Translations under genes and position numbers: made by a program
Part shown: positions 1 through 30,422 of the stretch, in pieces
How positions within the stretch are numbered: the first letter of the stretch is position 1
How the letters are laid out: each line of letters begins with the position of its first letter
Notes under the pieces: generated by a model
What the model saw: the letters and a program-made list of their open reading frames with translations, nothing else
The model's database searches: none
What the model was told of the DNA's origin: nothing
Assembly (NCBI GenBank): GCA_004764695.1
Contig: SMSO01000009.1
Span: 174,451 to 238,450, forward strand
From: Schizochytrium sp. TIO01
Taxonomy: Eukaryota > Protista > Bigyra: Labyrinthulomycetes
Length of the DNA: 64,000 nucleotides
Direction of reading: 5' to 3'

Positions 1-1780
1 TCTACCAACAACATTGGCGATGAGGGCGCAAAGGCCGTCGCAAAGGCACTCGAGGGATGCAAGAACCTTCAAACTTTAGAGTACGTTTGTGGAATCATCC
101 ACGAGGGAAAGCTATCGTAATAGTCAGGACCAAGCTTTTTCTTTCTTTCTTTTTAGTGCTTGGTGTTTGTAGTACTGCTGGTACACTACCTAAGTAGTTT
201 ACGTAGTTGGGTACGCAAAGAAAGGCAAAGAAGTCTTTTCTTTTTTACAAAGAGAAGAAGGAAATCTATATAATTTGATAGGCAGCAGCAGCAGCAGAAG
301 AAGAAGAGGTGATTGCTTTTTATTGTGCGGAAAAACAAAACAAAACAGGATCAACTGACTGGACCTGTCTTTCCTGACAACGAATGAACAAAACAAACTT
401 ATTCATTTATACTCACAGTCTTCAGTACAACAACATTGGCTCGGAGGGCGCAAAGGCCGTCGCAAAGGCACTCGAGGGATGCAAGAACCTGACTTATCTG
501 AAGTACGTTTGTGGAATCATCCACGAGGGAAAGCTATCGTAATAGTCAGGACCAAGCTTTTTCTTTCTTTCTTTTAGTGCTTGGTGTTTGTAGTACTGCT
601 GGTACACTACCTAAGTAGTTTACGTAGTTGGGTACGCAAAGAAAGGCAAAGAAGTCTTTTCTTTTTTACAAAGAGAAGAAGGAAATCTATATAATTTGAT
701 ACGCAGCAGCAGCAGCAGCAGCAGAAGAAGAGGTGATTGCTTTTTATTGTGAGGAAAAACAAAACAAAACAGGATCAACTGACTGGACCTGTCTTTCCTG
801 ACAACGAATGAACAAAACAAACTTATTCATTTATACTCACAGTCTTAGGGAGAACAACATTGGCTCGGAGGGCGCAAAGGCCGTCGCAAAGGCACTCGAG
901 GGATGCAAGAACCTGACTTATCTGAAGTACGTTTGTGGAATCATCCACGAGGGAAAGCTATCGTAATAGTCAGGACCAAGCTTTTTCTTTCTTTCTTTTT
1001 AGTGGTTGGTGTTTGTAGTACTGCTGGTACACTACCTAAGTAGTTTACGTAGTTGGGTACGCAAAGAAAGGCAAAGAAGACTTTTTTTTTTACAAAGAGA
1101 AGAAGGAAATCTATATAATTTGATACGCAGCAGCAGCAGCAGCAGAAGAAGAAGAGCTGATTGCTTTTTATTGTGAGGAAAAACAAAACAAAACAGGATC
1201 AACTGACTGGACCTGTCTTTCCTGACAACGAATGAACAAAACAAACTTATTCATGTATACTCACAGTCTTGGTAGCAACAACATTGGCGATGAGGGCGCA
1301 AAGGCCGTCGCAAAGGCACTCGAGGGATGCAAGAACCTTCAAGAATTGTAGTACGTTTGTGGAATCATCCACGAGGGAAAGCTATCGTAATAGTCAGGAC
1401 CAAGCTTTTTCTTTCTTTCTTTTTAGTGGTTGGTGTTTGTAGTACTGCTGGTACACTACCTAAGTAGTTTACGTAGTTGGGTACGCAAAGAAAGGCAAAG
1501 AAGTCTTTTTTTTTTACAAAGAGAAGAAGGAGATCTATATAATTTGATAGGCAGCAGCAGCAGCAGCAGAAGAAGAAGAAGAGGTGATTGCTTTTTATTG
1601 TGAGGAAGAACAAAACAAAACAGGATCAACTGACTGGACCTGTCTTTCCTGACAACAACGAATGAACAAAACAAACTTATTCATTTATACTCACAGTCTT
1701 TACAACAACAACATTGGCGATGAGGGCGCAAAGGCCGTCGCAAAGTCTCTGCACAAAGCATGTCCTTCTGTTCAAATCTA
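1..1780 (+). repeat. Tandem array of ~424-bp exon+intron units (LRR array 1; at least 5 exons, truncated by the window start)
   Basis: Exon starts at 419, 843, 1267 and 1697 (spacing 424, 424, 430). Introns GTACGT...ACTCACAG are nearly identical and differ mainly in (CAG)n(AAG)n and T-run lengths. Confidence 0.97.
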
Positions 1781-27500: not shown

Positions 27501-30422
27501 GTCGCCGATCTGGTTGTTTCTAAGACTGTCGATTTGATTGAATGATGGCAAGCAATACATTACATGTTACATGTTACAATAGATGCACGCATGCATGCAT
27601 GGACGTGAGTGATCTAGGTTGGCTTTCAGCATTTCATCTTTGTTGTGTTGTCATTTTGCTCTTTGTTCGATGGATGTATACTCACTCAAACAGACAACCC
27701 ATCCATCCATCAAACAAACAAGCGATTGCATAAATTTGCAAAACAACACCGTCCCACCCACCAAACAACAAACCAAGCATCATGTACAAACAAGTCCACG
27801 AGCAGCGCTGTTGCGTAGACAACTTACGATAGTAATGTCAGCGACCGGTTCTCTTTCAGCGCCGCAGCCACTGCCTTGGCGCCCTCGTCGCCGATATCGT
27901 TGCCAGAAACTCTGTCGATTTGATTGAATGATGGCAAGCAATACACATTACACGTTACATATTACAATAGATGGACGCATGCATGCATGGACGTGAGTGA
28001 TCTAGGTTGGCTTTCAGCATTTTGTCTTTGTTGTGTTGTCATTTTGCTCTTTGTTCGATGGATGTATACTCACTCAAACAGACAACTCATCCATCCATCA
28101 AACAAACAAGCGATTGCATAAACTTGCAAAACAACACCGACCCACCCACCAAACAACAAACCAAGCATCATGTACAAACAAGTCCACGAGCTGCGGTGTT
28201 GCGTAGACAACTTACAATAGTAATGTCAGCGACCGGTTCTCTTTCAGCGTCGCAGCCACTGCCTTGGCGCCCTGTGAGCCGATATCGTTGTTATCAAGAC
28301 TGTCGATTTGATTGAATGATGGCAAGAAATACATTACACGTTACATATTACAATAGATGCACGCATGCATGCATGGACGTGAGTGATCTAGGTTGGCTTT
28401 CAGCATTTCATCTTTGTTGTGTTGTCATTTTGCTCTTTGTTCGATGGATGTATACTCACTCAAACAGACAACCCATCCATCCATCAAACAAACAAGCGAT
28501 TGCATAAACTTGCAAAACAACACCGACCCACCCACCCACCAAACAACAAACCAATCATCATGTACAAACAAGTCCACGAGCTGCGGTGTTGCGTAGACAA
28601 CTTACTTGAGTGATGCCAGCGACCGGTTCTCTTTCAGCGCCGCAGCCACTGCCTTGGCGCCCTCTGAGCCGATATCGTTGCTTCTAATGCTGTCGATTTG
28701 ATTGAATGATGGCAAGCAATACACATTACACGTTACATATTACAATAGATGCACGCATGCATGCATGGACGTGAGTGATCTAGGTTGGCTTTCCGCATTT
28801 TGTCTTTGTTGTGTTGTCATTTTGCTGTTTGTTCGATTGATGTATACTCACTCAAACAGACAACTTATCCATCTATCCATCCATTAACCAAACAATCAAA
28901 CAAACAAACAAGCGACTGCATAAACTTGCAAAACAACACCGACCCACCCACCAAACAACAAACCAAGCATCATATACAAACAAGTCCACGAGCTGCGGTG
29001 TTGCGTAGACAACTTACGTTAGTAATGTCAGCGACCGGTTCTCTTTCAGCGCCGCAGCCACTGCCTTCGCGCCCTCTGAGCCGATATCGTTGCTTCTAAG
29101 ACTGTCGATTTGATTGAATGATGGCAACCAATACATTACACGTTACATGTTACAATAGATGCTCGCATGCATGCATGGACGTGAGTGATCTAGGTTGGCT
29201 TTCAGCATTGCATCTTTGTTGTGTTGTCATTTTGCTCTTTGTTCGATGGATATATACTCACTCAAACAGACAACTCATCCATCCATCAAACAAACAAGCG
29301 ATTGCATAAACTTGCAAAACAACACCGACCCACCCACCAAACAACAAACCAAGCATCATGTACAAACAAGTCCACGAGCTGCGGTGTTGCGTAGACAACT
29401 TACTCAAGTGATGTCAGCGACCGGTTCTCTTTCAGCGCCGCAGCCACTGCCTTGGCGCCCTCTGAGCCGATATTGTTGCCAAAAAGACTGTCGATTTGAT
29501 TGAATCATGGCAAGCAATACATTACACGTTACATATTACAATAGATGCACGCATGCATGCATGGACGTGAGTGATCTAGGTTGGCTTTCAGCATTTATCT
29601 TTGTTGTGTTGTCATTTTGCTCTTTGTTCGATGGATGTATACTCACTCAAACAGACAACCCATCCATCCATCAAACAAACAAGCGATTGCATAAACTTGC
29701 AAAACAACACCGACCCACCCACCAAACAACAAACCAAGCATCATATACAAACAAGTTCACGAGCTGCGGTGTTGCGTAGACAACTTACTCAAGTGATGTC
29801 AGCGACCGGTTCTCTTTCAGCCCCGCAGCCACTGCCTTGGCGCCCTCTGAGCCGATTTTGTTGCTTCTAAGACTGTCAATTTGATTGAATGATGGCAAGC
29901 AATACATTACACGTTACATATTACAATAGATGTACGCATGCATGCATGGACGTGAGTGGTCTAGGTTGGCTTTCAGCATTTATCTTTGTCGTTTTGTCAT
30001 TTTGCTCTTTGTTTTGATGGATGCATACCAATAAATCAACCAAACAAGCAATCGCATGAACTTGGGATCCAACAAAACAAACGACTACCCAGGCAAGCAA
30101 GCAAGCAAGCAAGCAAGCAAGCAAGCAAGCAAGCAAGCAAGCAAGCAAGCAAGCAAGCAAGCAAGCAAGCAAGCAAGCAAGCAAGCAAGCAAGCAAGCAA
30201 GCAAGCAAGCAAGCAAGCAAGCAAGCAAGCAAGCAAGCAAGCAAGCAAGCAAGCAAGCAAGCAAGCAAGCAAGCAAGCAAGCAAGCAAGCAAGCAAGCAA
30301 GCAAGCAAGCAAGCAAGCAAGCAAGCAAGCAAGCAAGCGAGTAGAGTGTTAACTTACCTCAATCGTGTAGCGCCATTCTGAAGCTTTTCAAGGGCAGCGA
30401 CAACACGTGGGTGGTCCGACAT
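24560..30422 (-). CDS. 15-exon, 490-aa LRR protein (N-cap + 13 single-exon RI-like LRRs + C-terminal helical tail)
   Basis: Exon 1 30422-30358 (MSDHPRVVAALEKLQNGATRL). Thirteen 84-bp exons: 29872-29789, 29487-29404, 29101-29018, 28689-28606, 28299-28216, 27911-27828, 27525-27442, 27148-27065, 26773-26690, 26387-26304, 26002-25919, 25628-25545, 25250-25167 (LxxNxIG[S/D]EGAKAVAAALKENRSLxxLx). Last exon 24875-24560. All introns are GTAAGT...AG and phase 2. 1473 nt = 491 codons with no internal stop. Confidence 0.92.
25167..30030 (-). repeat. Tandem array of 13 ~385-bp exon+intron units (LRR array 2)
   Basis: Unit spacing is 374-412 bp. The introns are near-identical to each other but unrelated to the array 1 introns. 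Confidence 0.97.
30093..30337. repeat. (GCAA)n microsatellite, ~245 bp, in intron 1 of the minus-strand LRR gene
   Basis: Read directly; it explains the LLAC/QASK pseudo-ORFs. Confidence 0.97.

Follow-up and report, generated by a model that had tools for sequence, protein, structure and literature searches.

Two arrays of leucine-rich repeat exons flank the rRNA genes

The stretch analysed here (hereafter the window) is 64,000 nucleotides (nt) of Schizochytrium sp. TIO01 (GenBank assembly GCA_004764695.1, contig SMSO01000009.1) and constitutes the last 64 kb of the 238-kb contig C8, in an assembly of 64.07 Mb and 37 contigs (up to 9.8 Mb). It carries two long tandem arrays that prove to be the exons and introns of genes for leucine-rich repeat (LRR) proteins, with hypervariable residues on the predicted binding face. 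Array 1 occupies positions 6-1745 of the plus strand (period 424, 4.1 copies, 95% matches), and array 2 occupies positions 25099-30028 of the minus strand (period 386, 12.8 copies, 90% matches; both by Tandem Repeats Finder). Between the two arrays lies a 28S-5.8S-18S rRNA unit (15772-21303, minus strand; Rfam). A 5S rRNA gene is located downstream of the array-1 gene (8598-8716, plus strand; Rfam, 96.5 bits), and a second 5S rRNA gene (30882-31000, plus strand; Rfam) and the array-2 gene are arranged head-to-head, with 460 bp between this 5S gene and the array-2 ATG.

Both arrays were scanned mechanically for stop-free segments of the form AG + 84 nt + GT. The scan recovered 4 complete exons in array 1 and 13 in array 2, bearing out an earlier description of the window by a model that saw only the letters and their open reading frames (ORFs; hereafter the sequence-only reading), which had resolved the arrays into 84-bp phase-2 exons with canonical splice sites and no stops. 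In both arrays, each exon comprises 1 base, 27 codons, and 2 bases, as defined by phase-2 introns, and encodes one 28-residue LRR of the ribonuclease-inhibitor (RI) type. Specifically, the array-2 exon product reads (x)LxxNxIG[S/D]EGAKAV[A/G]AALKENRSLTSL(x), and array-1 exons encode the equivalent. The residues that the sequence-only reading had quoted from individual units, RS, FG, DN, SG, RN, HG, FR, and ED, and LQY, LRE, LGS, and LYN, are all present. Since all introns are in phase 2, units can be gained, lost, and swapped in frame.

Database and family searches were made exon by exon, and the spliced model was checked for an open frame with a local script. The Pfam family LRR_6 (PF13516) matches single exons with E-values of 4.7e-5 to 5e-4 and scores of 20.4-23.6 bits, against a cut-off of 23.4 bits; these scores come from single exons, each of which holds just half of each repeat.

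The array-1 gene joins LRR exons to a kinase and RBR-like exon

The portion of the array-1 gene in the window starts with an LRR exon cut by the window edge (1-80, plus strand), beyond which the array extends leftwards as far as G000:C8:173604 or further. Next come four complete LRR exons of 84 bp (419-502, 843-926, 1267-1350, and 1697-1780, plus strand; Pfam LRR_6 on 420-500), separated by near-identical introns of ~340 bp. A 189-nt linker exon (1953-2141, plus strand), placed by hand from the sequence and the list of ORFs, leads in frame from the last LRR exon to a long 3′ exon of 2.7 kb (2304-4992, plus strand; stop codon 4990-4992). The product of the long exon has a helical region and a kinase domain, and its Cys-rich C-terminus is RBR-like (IBR/Rcat-like). 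This kinase and RBR-like region is confined to the array-1 gene, of the two array genes.

The kinase assignment is based on a Pfam Pkinase match with an E-value of 4.2e-28 on the 895 residues encoded by 2305-4989. For the C-terminus, Pfam returns IBR_2 at E 0.86, and the best match in the PDB is parkin RING2 at E 0.02, a weak match in which a CPxC...GC...C...C..FC..C pattern is aligned between the two proteins. The C-terminus is thus weak in matches but consistent with a putative RBR ligase. The kinase exon is found at 51 places in the genome, 45 of them without stop codons, and adjoins an array of the array-1 type wherever both are listed. Among 5.8 billion proteins, the kinase and RBR-like exon has only 3 close relatives (51-59% identity), all from raw-read assemblies. 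The kinase homologues P0006-P0008, from other assemblies, are 56-59% identical.

The array-2 gene joins LRR exons to an orphan tail

Array 2 belongs to a complete gene that comprises an ATG exon, 13 LRR exons, and a terminal exon, with a spliced ORF of 490 residues. Exon 1 (30358-30422, minus strand; ATG 30422-30420) is 65 nt long, reads MSDHPRVVAALEKLQNGATRL, and is conserved in 20 of 21 loci of this type, with a deletion at the remaining one (L020). Intron 1 contains a perfect (GCAA)61 microsatellite (30093-30338). The LRR exons, all on the minus strand and 84 bp each, are located at 29789-29872, 29404-29487, 29018-29101, and 28606-28689 (LRR exons 1-4), at 28216-28299, 27828-27911, 27442-27525, 27065-27148, and 26690-26773 (LRR exons 5-9), and at 26304-26387, 25919-26002, 25545-25628, and 25167-25250 (LRR exons 10-13), and are separated by introns of ~300 bp; the array matches Pfam LRR_6. 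The terminal exon (24560-24875, minus strand; stop codon 24562-24560) encodes, by translation, an orphan tail of ~105 residues (104), and its splice acceptor is conserved in 21 loci. In the genome, the tail exon is found at 73 places, of which 71 are stop-free.

Neither a signal peptide nor a membrane span is present in the 490-residue spliced ORF. In the absence of signal peptides, surface antigenic variation is unlikely for these proteins.

A second branch of the tail, of the type carried by the relative P0002 (see below), occurs at ~18 places in the genome, which are 80-91% identical to an MMETSP transcript. One of these places (G000:C8:167341-167676, minus strand) lies ~7 kb to the left of the window.

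The arrays probably correspond to LORE-TEARS groups 0 and 5

The sequence-only reading had pointed to repeats with units of ~400 bp beside subtelomeric rRNA genes (rDNA) in Aurantiochytrium limacinum, described as LORE-TEARS spacers. A preprint on A. limacinum describes a group 0 of LORE-TEARS, with a unit of ~385 bp (326-627) in a mean of 9.3 copies (1.8-20.6) between 5S and 18S genes, and a group 5, with a unit of ~421-430 bp (408-481) in a mean of 5.4 copies, typically between two 5S genes. In the length of the unit, the number of copies, and the position, array 2 agrees with group 0, and array 1, as far as it lies in the window, with group 5. In particular, array 2 resembles group 0 in having 12.8 copies of a 386-bp unit and in lying between an 18S gene (ending at 21303) and a 5S gene (30882). 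Array 1 resembles group 5 in having at least 4.1 copies of a 424-bp unit; it runs off the window, with a 5S gene downstream at 8598 and its upstream side outside the window, and the same type of array sits beside a 5S pair at another locus (L005). Arrays 2 and 1 are very probably the same DNA objects as LORE-TEARS groups 0 and 5, respectively, matched on size, copies, and position rather than on sequence, and in another assembly.

The two accounts differ in what the repeats are: LORE-TEARS were published as anonymous repeats, whereas the arrays here are spliced hypervariable LRR genes. The preprint reports that the repeats lack GenBank similarity and proposes a function in chromosome-end maintenance; it contains 0 occurrences of the terms LRR, leucine, and coding for LORE-TEARS, and our literature search returned no paper tying Aurantiochytrium chromosome-end repeats to LRR genes. 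The window contains no TTAGG telomere repeat anywhere, and its placement as subtelomeric therefore rests on the LORE-TEARS paper.

Every group-0 intron carries a G-run, GGTGGGTGGGTCGGTG (for example, 25840-25870, minus strand). For some LORE-TEARS of group 0, the preprint predicts a 'G-quadruplex', which probably corresponds to this G-run.

Group-0 repeats are coding

In the genome, the array-2 unit is matched at least 392 times and the array-1 unit at least 350 times, on most contigs. We analysed 21 array-2-type loci, comprising 20 fetched 10-kb stretches and the window. Between anchors at the intron ends, 271 of 271 exons are exactly 84 bp long, have AG/GT borders, and are stop-free, and these 271 exons bear the repeat consensus LxxLxLxxNxLGxxGAxxLxxxL. 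From base frequencies, 53.5 stop codons would be expected at the variable codons, as compared to 0 observed (Poisson P ~6e-24). All 21 loci have an ATG exon, 4-21 LRR exons, and a tail exon, with a unit spacing of 370-410 bp, and 20 of them have intact spliced ORFs, of 243-718 residues. The conclusion that group-0 repeats are coding, rather than incidental frames, is well supported.

These results bear on a reading in which the repeats are non-coding structural spacers, serving in the maintenance of chromosome ends or rDNA or forming G-quadruplexes, and in which the open frames are incidental. Such a reading accommodates the lack of GenBank similarity, the end-maintenance proposal of the preprint, and the G-run in the group-0 intron. 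As a sole explanation, it is contradicted by the 271 intact exons, the absence of stops where 53.5 are expected, the canonical splice sites, the spliced contigs and transcript described below, the 20 intact ORFs, the Pfam LRR_6 matches, and the purifying selection on the repeat scaffold, and we regard it as scarcely credible; a role at the level of the DNA could coexist with coding. A pseudogene array was also considered and was rejected.

At 14 of 15 other loci, as in the window, a head-to-head 5S gene is located ~0.5 kb upstream of the ATG of the LRR gene. The 5S gene and the LRR gene share a short divergent region (RNA polymerase III and RNA polymerase II, respectively), with distances from ATG to 5S of ~0.45-1 kb.

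The repeats are spliced in frame

To document splicing, we used mappings of four contig-set runs (X1, X3, X5, and X19) to positions 24500-29390. X1, X3, and X5, from three studies with three organism labels, are RNA only by guess, and X19 is DNA-like. X1, X3, and X5 contain contig joints exactly at predicted exon borders (25250, 26690, 26773, 27148, 27442, 27828, and 28606), and the segments skipped between joints have CT..AC ends, corresponding to GT..AG on the coding strand. X19, a single contig-level run, has no joints at exon borders. The loose contig ends include LRR exon joined to LRR exon, and exon-1-like sequence (..NGATTL or ..NGATKL) spliced to LRR exon. Differences in depth between exons and introns are large in X1, X3, and X5 and were left unused, because contig depth cannot rank the parts of a gene.

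In the MMETSP transcript P0003, the final part of an intron is followed by the last LRR exon, onto which the tail exon is spliced in frame. P0003 and a second MMETSP transcript, P0001, are only 84-90% identical to the genome. At this identity, both transcripts represent a relative or an unscored paralogue, so that they document a family that is expressed and spliced, and are not proof for this locus. That the repeats are the exons and introns of real spliced genes is well supported.

The sequence-only reading had looked to spliced mRNA, to units elsewhere without frequent stops or frameshifts, and to different arrays at different loci. The joints at predicted borders in the RNA-like runs and the LRR-to-tail junction of the transcript agree with the first, the 271 exons and 20 ORFs of the preceding section with the second, and the comparison of loci given below with the third.

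Four residues per repeat are hypervariable

An alignment of 237 array-2-type units from the 21 loci reveals extreme diversity at a few positions. Specifically, exon positions 5-10, 14, 16, and 82-84 have a nucleotide diversity of 0.63-0.71, as compared to ~0.5 at two dimorphic codons, ~0.04 in the remainder of the exon, and a mean of 0.077 in introns; variable codons vary 8-9 times more than introns. In the window's copy of array 1, variation affects 20 of 84 columns in the exon, as compared to 10 of ~340 in the intron, and the xx of NLxxL varies there too. The claim of the sequence-only reading that the x positions of the exons vary more than the adjacent introns therefore holds in both arrays. 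The variable codons encode 19, 15, and 13 different amino acids, as compared to 95-100% fixation at the codons beside them. In the repeat L1xxL4xL6xxN9x (LxxLxLxxNx), the variable residues correspond to x5 (a codon split by the intron), x7, x8, and x10. Their codons form two patches ~300 bp apart in the DNA that are adjacent in the mRNA and in the β-strand; that the patches are adjacent only after splicing points to selection on the protein rather than to a DNA hot spot.

The excess on the concave face was judged by comparing variable sites with flanking introns, and not by a codon site model. In unit pairs with 200-bp intron flanks that are identical or diverged by at most 1%, 26-46% of variable nucleotides differ, as compared to 0.8-3% of scaffold nucleotides, and in near-identical duplicated arrays, differences are 4-5 times commoner at variable sites than in introns. 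The proportions of nonsynonymous and synonymous differences (pN and pS) at scaffold codons are 0.045 and 0.10 (pN/pS 0.44; ratio of substitution rates, dN/dS, 0.41), indicating purifying selection, and pN at the variable codons is 0.59. Among unit pairs with the same amino acid, the proportion with different codons is 0.11 at codon 3 and 0.17 at codon 5, and 0.084 at scaffold codons. Codon 5 nearly lacks the silent T/C change, and replacement changes (T/A/G) are abundant there. The hypervariability of four predicted binding-face residues per repeat is well supported.

Array-2-type exons also contain two balanced dimorphisms: codon 8, which follows IG, encodes either S (TCA) or D (GAC), and codon 15, in AKAV[A/G]A, encodes either A or G (example unit, 25545-25628). 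Neither dimorphism is linked to the other or to the variable codons. Between near-identical arrays, the dimorphisms switch as whole 3-nt blocks, such as TCA/GAC, a pattern suggestive of conversion from a template over very short tracts.

An alternative source of this variation would be a local mutational process, such as error-prone repair or micro-conversion near splice junctions, acting with relaxed constraint, with selection only purging stops; neither diversity-favouring selection nor a repertoire for recognition would then exist. Such a process would account for a pS of 0.49 in the variable codons (0.43 at codon 2), for the flipping of TCA/GAC blocks between near-identical arrays, and for the lack of linkage between variable codons 6-30 nt apart. 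It is hard to reconcile with patches that are separated by ~300 bp of DNA and come together only in the mRNA and protein, with near-baseline synonymous diversity and saturated amino-acid diversity at codons 3 and 5, and with a silent third-base T/C change that is almost absent where T/A/G replacement is abundant; 0 stops are observed as compared to 53.5 expected. We consider this process unlikely as the explanation.

The variable residues lie on the predicted concave face

The horseshoe fold was modelled for a natural relative of the window's protein, P0002, which comprises 5 LRRs and a tail. The AlphaFold model of P0002 (predicted local distance difference test score, pLDDT, 78.7) reveals alternating strand and helix in an RI-type LRR arc. 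The tail of the model, which is aligned to the region of the array-2 tail, forms two long helices with a disordered loop between them, in a helical hairpin. The strand assigned by DSSP spans x3-x8, and the variable residues x5, x7, x8, and x10 are predicted to lie in or just after the β-strand, in agreement with the proposal of the sequence-only reading that these positions form the concave ligand-binding face. The top Foldseek matches of the model include the LRR domains of tropomodulin/leiomodin, NLRP1, NOD2, NLRP3, and RI (E-values 1e-6 to 1e-4), and also axonemal LRR proteins.

Units are exchanged between loci

Arrays differ from locus to locus, and for 70% of units the closest intron relative is found outside the unit's own locus. 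On average, introns diverge by 0.061 inside an array and by 0.072 from one array to another. Taken together, the nearest relatives and the intron divergence indicate genome-wide exchange, in a concerted evolution that homogenises the entire family across chromosome ends as a single pool, to which some local duplication is added. Between loci, introns and scaffold codons remain 92-98% alike. Codons 2 and 3 move together as a 6-nt cassette (z = 21.7), and variable sites 6-30 nt apart are otherwise unlinked. The cassette linkage and the flipping blocks fit short templated exchanges plus selection, and the differences between loci, with 70% of nearest relatives elsewhere, fit exchange among chromosome ends.

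Two further readings build on exchange. In one, the arrays would be cassette stores, in which recombination between ends or combinatorial exon skipping creates diversity within a clone or cell, making up an adaptive-like or contingency system of the VLR, VSG, or var kind. The symmetric 84-nt exons, with phase-2 introns on both sides, would keep the frame under skipping or swapping, units exchange between loci, array length ranges from 4 to 21, and some of the RNA-like contigs that join non-adjacent exons 'go back'; such odd joints are expected from mis-mapped transcripts of paralogues, the DNA-like run X19 is without rearranged joints, and all sampled loci but one are already complete genes with ATG and tail. 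We judge this reading very unlikely. In the other, the rDNA modules at chromosome ends would themselves be a diversity generator, in which exchange between dozens of ends and possible in-frame skipping reshuffle the 84-nt cassettes and clonal repertoires differ, amounting, in a unicellular stramenopile with persistent mirusviruses, to an adaptive-like or contingency immunity in which a sensor is coupled to kinase and ubiquitin-ligase outputs. This is a quite speculative extension, and we hold it to be improbable.

Facing pairs of group-0 genes are also present deep in multi-Mb contigs, for example at 4.02 Mb (plus strand) and 4.06 Mb (minus strand) of C13 and at 5.48 Mb (plus strand) and 5.52 Mb (minus strand) of C30. 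These pairs represent either chromosome ends joined by the assembly or rDNA/LRR modules that are also internal.

Relation to known LRR and chromosome-end systems

Among known systems, the closest is the shuffling of exons, each encoding one LRR, in the ROCO genes of Ectocarpus. Candidate receptors of the LRR-ROCO and NB-ARC-TPR types that undergo exon shuffling occur in Ectocarpus and other brown algae (PMC3341825; PMC11378527). The Ectocarpus ROCO-LRR genes have 72-nt phase-0 exons, each encoding a 24-residue plant-type LRR, and show positive selection on the concave face. The sequence-only reading had cited this precedent, which holds in substance and differs in exon length and phase. The two systems share a stramenopile host, one LRR per symmetric exon, an excess of change on the concave face, and fusion of LRRs to a signalling module. 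They differ in that the exons here are 84 nt long, encode a 28-residue RI-type LRR, and are in phase 2, with the splice site within a hypervariable codon; in that the LRRs here are joined to a kinase and RBR-like module or to an orphan tail, with no ROC-COR or NB-ARC; and in that here long introns are near-identical genome-wide, arrays are interleaved with rRNA genes, and the contrast between variable sites and flanks is sharper.

Pfam detects no ROC-COR module: the 895-residue exon gives Pkinase and a weak IBR_2, and the tail gives nothing credible. Likewise, neither the exon at 2305-4989 nor the tail has a Pfam match to NACHT, NB-ARC, TIR, or a death-fold domain; these were the parts searched, and the array-1 gene has its 5′ end outside the window. 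Since no NACHT, NB-ARC, or ROC-COR was found in the parts searched, the genes are classed as neither NLR nor ROCO. The LRRs of the NLR and RI proteins (NLRP1, NOD2, NLRP3, and RI) are of the same 28-residue type, LxxLxLxxNxIGxxGAxxLAxAL, with unrelated gene structure and setting.

The germline copy of a VLR gene is incomplete, and somatic assembly from cassettes without introns completes it. The genes here resemble them in the LRR scaffold, in the hypervariable residues on the concave face, and in a diversity that derives from many similar cassettes (discussed in PMC3341825). They are not VLR-like, inasmuch as complete intron-containing germline genes are present at 20 of 21 loci and X19, one contig-level run, contains no joints in DNA. 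Other subtelomeric families diversify by ectopic exchange, including Plasmodium var, Trypanosoma VSG, and yeast FLO and PAU, and encode parasite-surface or cell-wall proteins. The arrays here resemble these in being a large chromosome-end family with exchange between non-homologous ends and with variable copy and repeat numbers, and differ in encoding predicted intracellular LRR proteins of a free-living saprotroph, among rRNA genes.

A probable intracellular recognition repertoire

We interpret the loci as hypervariable LRR-gene arrays that probably form an intracellular recognition repertoire, with a rough probability of 0.64 for the whole explanation taken jointly. In the proposed mechanism, unequal crossing-over and gene conversion would homogenise the units, and selection for amino-acid diversity on the concave face would maintain an intracellular binding repertoire of many specificities. 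The LRR-kinase-RBR genes would be sensors with built-in signalling and ubiquitin-ligase output, and the LRR-tail genes may be binders or adaptors. The most likely role would be to recognise variable non-self ligands, for example viral or parasite proteins.

A binding repertoire could also serve a function outside immunity, as an allorecognition or mating-type-like system, as ubiquitin-ligase adaptors for endogenous targets, or as nucleolar or RNase-related regulators. RI-type LRRs have many non-immune roles, and the top structural matches of P0002 include tropomodulin and axonemal LRR proteins; the genes are tied physically to 5S and 18S-28S genes, and NACHT, NB-ARC, TIR, and death-fold domains are missing from the parts searched. 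On the other hand, extreme site-specific diversity over ~100 or more paralogues is typical of proteins that bind variable ligands, not endogenous targets, and the linkage to rDNA may merely reflect the architecture of chromosome ends. We consider a non-immune function doubtful.

Several observations weigh against the interpretation as a recognition repertoire. The immune role itself is a reasonable but provisional proposal that rests on analogy. With respect to sampling, the 21 loci, out of an estimated 70 or more, were drawn from the best search matches, and the array-1-type exons sampled number 12. With respect to expression, the RNA-like runs are contigs whose RNA nature is guessed and which are without power for full-length isoforms, and the mapped joints connect non-adjacent exons of the array-2 locus; these joints are not evidence of exon skipping, because transcripts of paralogues are expected to map here, given the at least 392 near-identical units. 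With respect to selection, the formal dN/dS at the variable codons is only ~1.45, and synonymous diversity is raised at the same codons (pS 0.49 overall and 0.43 at codon 2), such that an added mutational or old-allele effect has to be allowed for; tree-based tests are unreliable, because the variable sites are saturated and recombination is present.

The array-2 product adds a further difficulty, since it is without a signalling domain and has only the orphan helical tail. Pfam assigns the tail to no family beyond a chance-level PGAP1_2nd (E 0.14), and the ESM Atlas yields mixed helical families below recognition level. In a search of 1.84 billion representatives, only 2 clusters match the tail, both from transcriptomes or metagenomes of relatives; the named cluster members are ORFs from MMETSP transcriptomes, and one further member is from a JGI/IMG metagenome. 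Among the terminal exons of 10 paralogues, pN/pS is ~1, and the tail itself may be evolving fast, instead of being a conserved effector domain.

If the interpretation as a recognition repertoire is correct, anonymous end spacers become roughly a hundred or more expressed genes with many hundreds of LRR cassettes, and the re-reading changes both the gene count and the view of the 'universal subtelomeric rDNA' architecture of Aurantiochytrium. The family would be the second independent stramenopile case of exon-per-repeat LRR diversification, with a much cleaner signal, owing to near-identical introns and saturated codons, and with output modules that would be new for such systems, namely a kinase with an RBR-like region and an orphan helical tail. 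Diversified intracellular LRR immunity in protists would become directly testable, Aurantiochytrium being culturable and transformable and carrying persistent mirusviruses (PMC12606086). The locus would also serve as a natural model for the joint action of concerted evolution and diversifying selection on sites separated by a few nucleotides.

Neighbouring features of the window

Three tRNA genes (Rfam), at 13231-15180, occupy the interval that separates the 5S gene from the 28S side of the rDNA unit. Of these, the gene at 15066-15180 is probably intron-containing, given its length of 115 nt. At the opposite end of the window, an (AAGAC)50 run (63678-63927) stops 73 bp short of the contig end.

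A non-repetitive paralogue of the array-2 gene is located at 42277-44861 (plus strand). It comprises an ATG exon and ~5 LRR exons of 84 bp with unique introns of 64-100 bp, followed in its 3′ part by an intron-free block of ~14 LRRs and then a homologous C-terminal tail, as identified by tail alignment. The paralogue is not part of the arrays and provides a useful outgroup or ancestral state for them.

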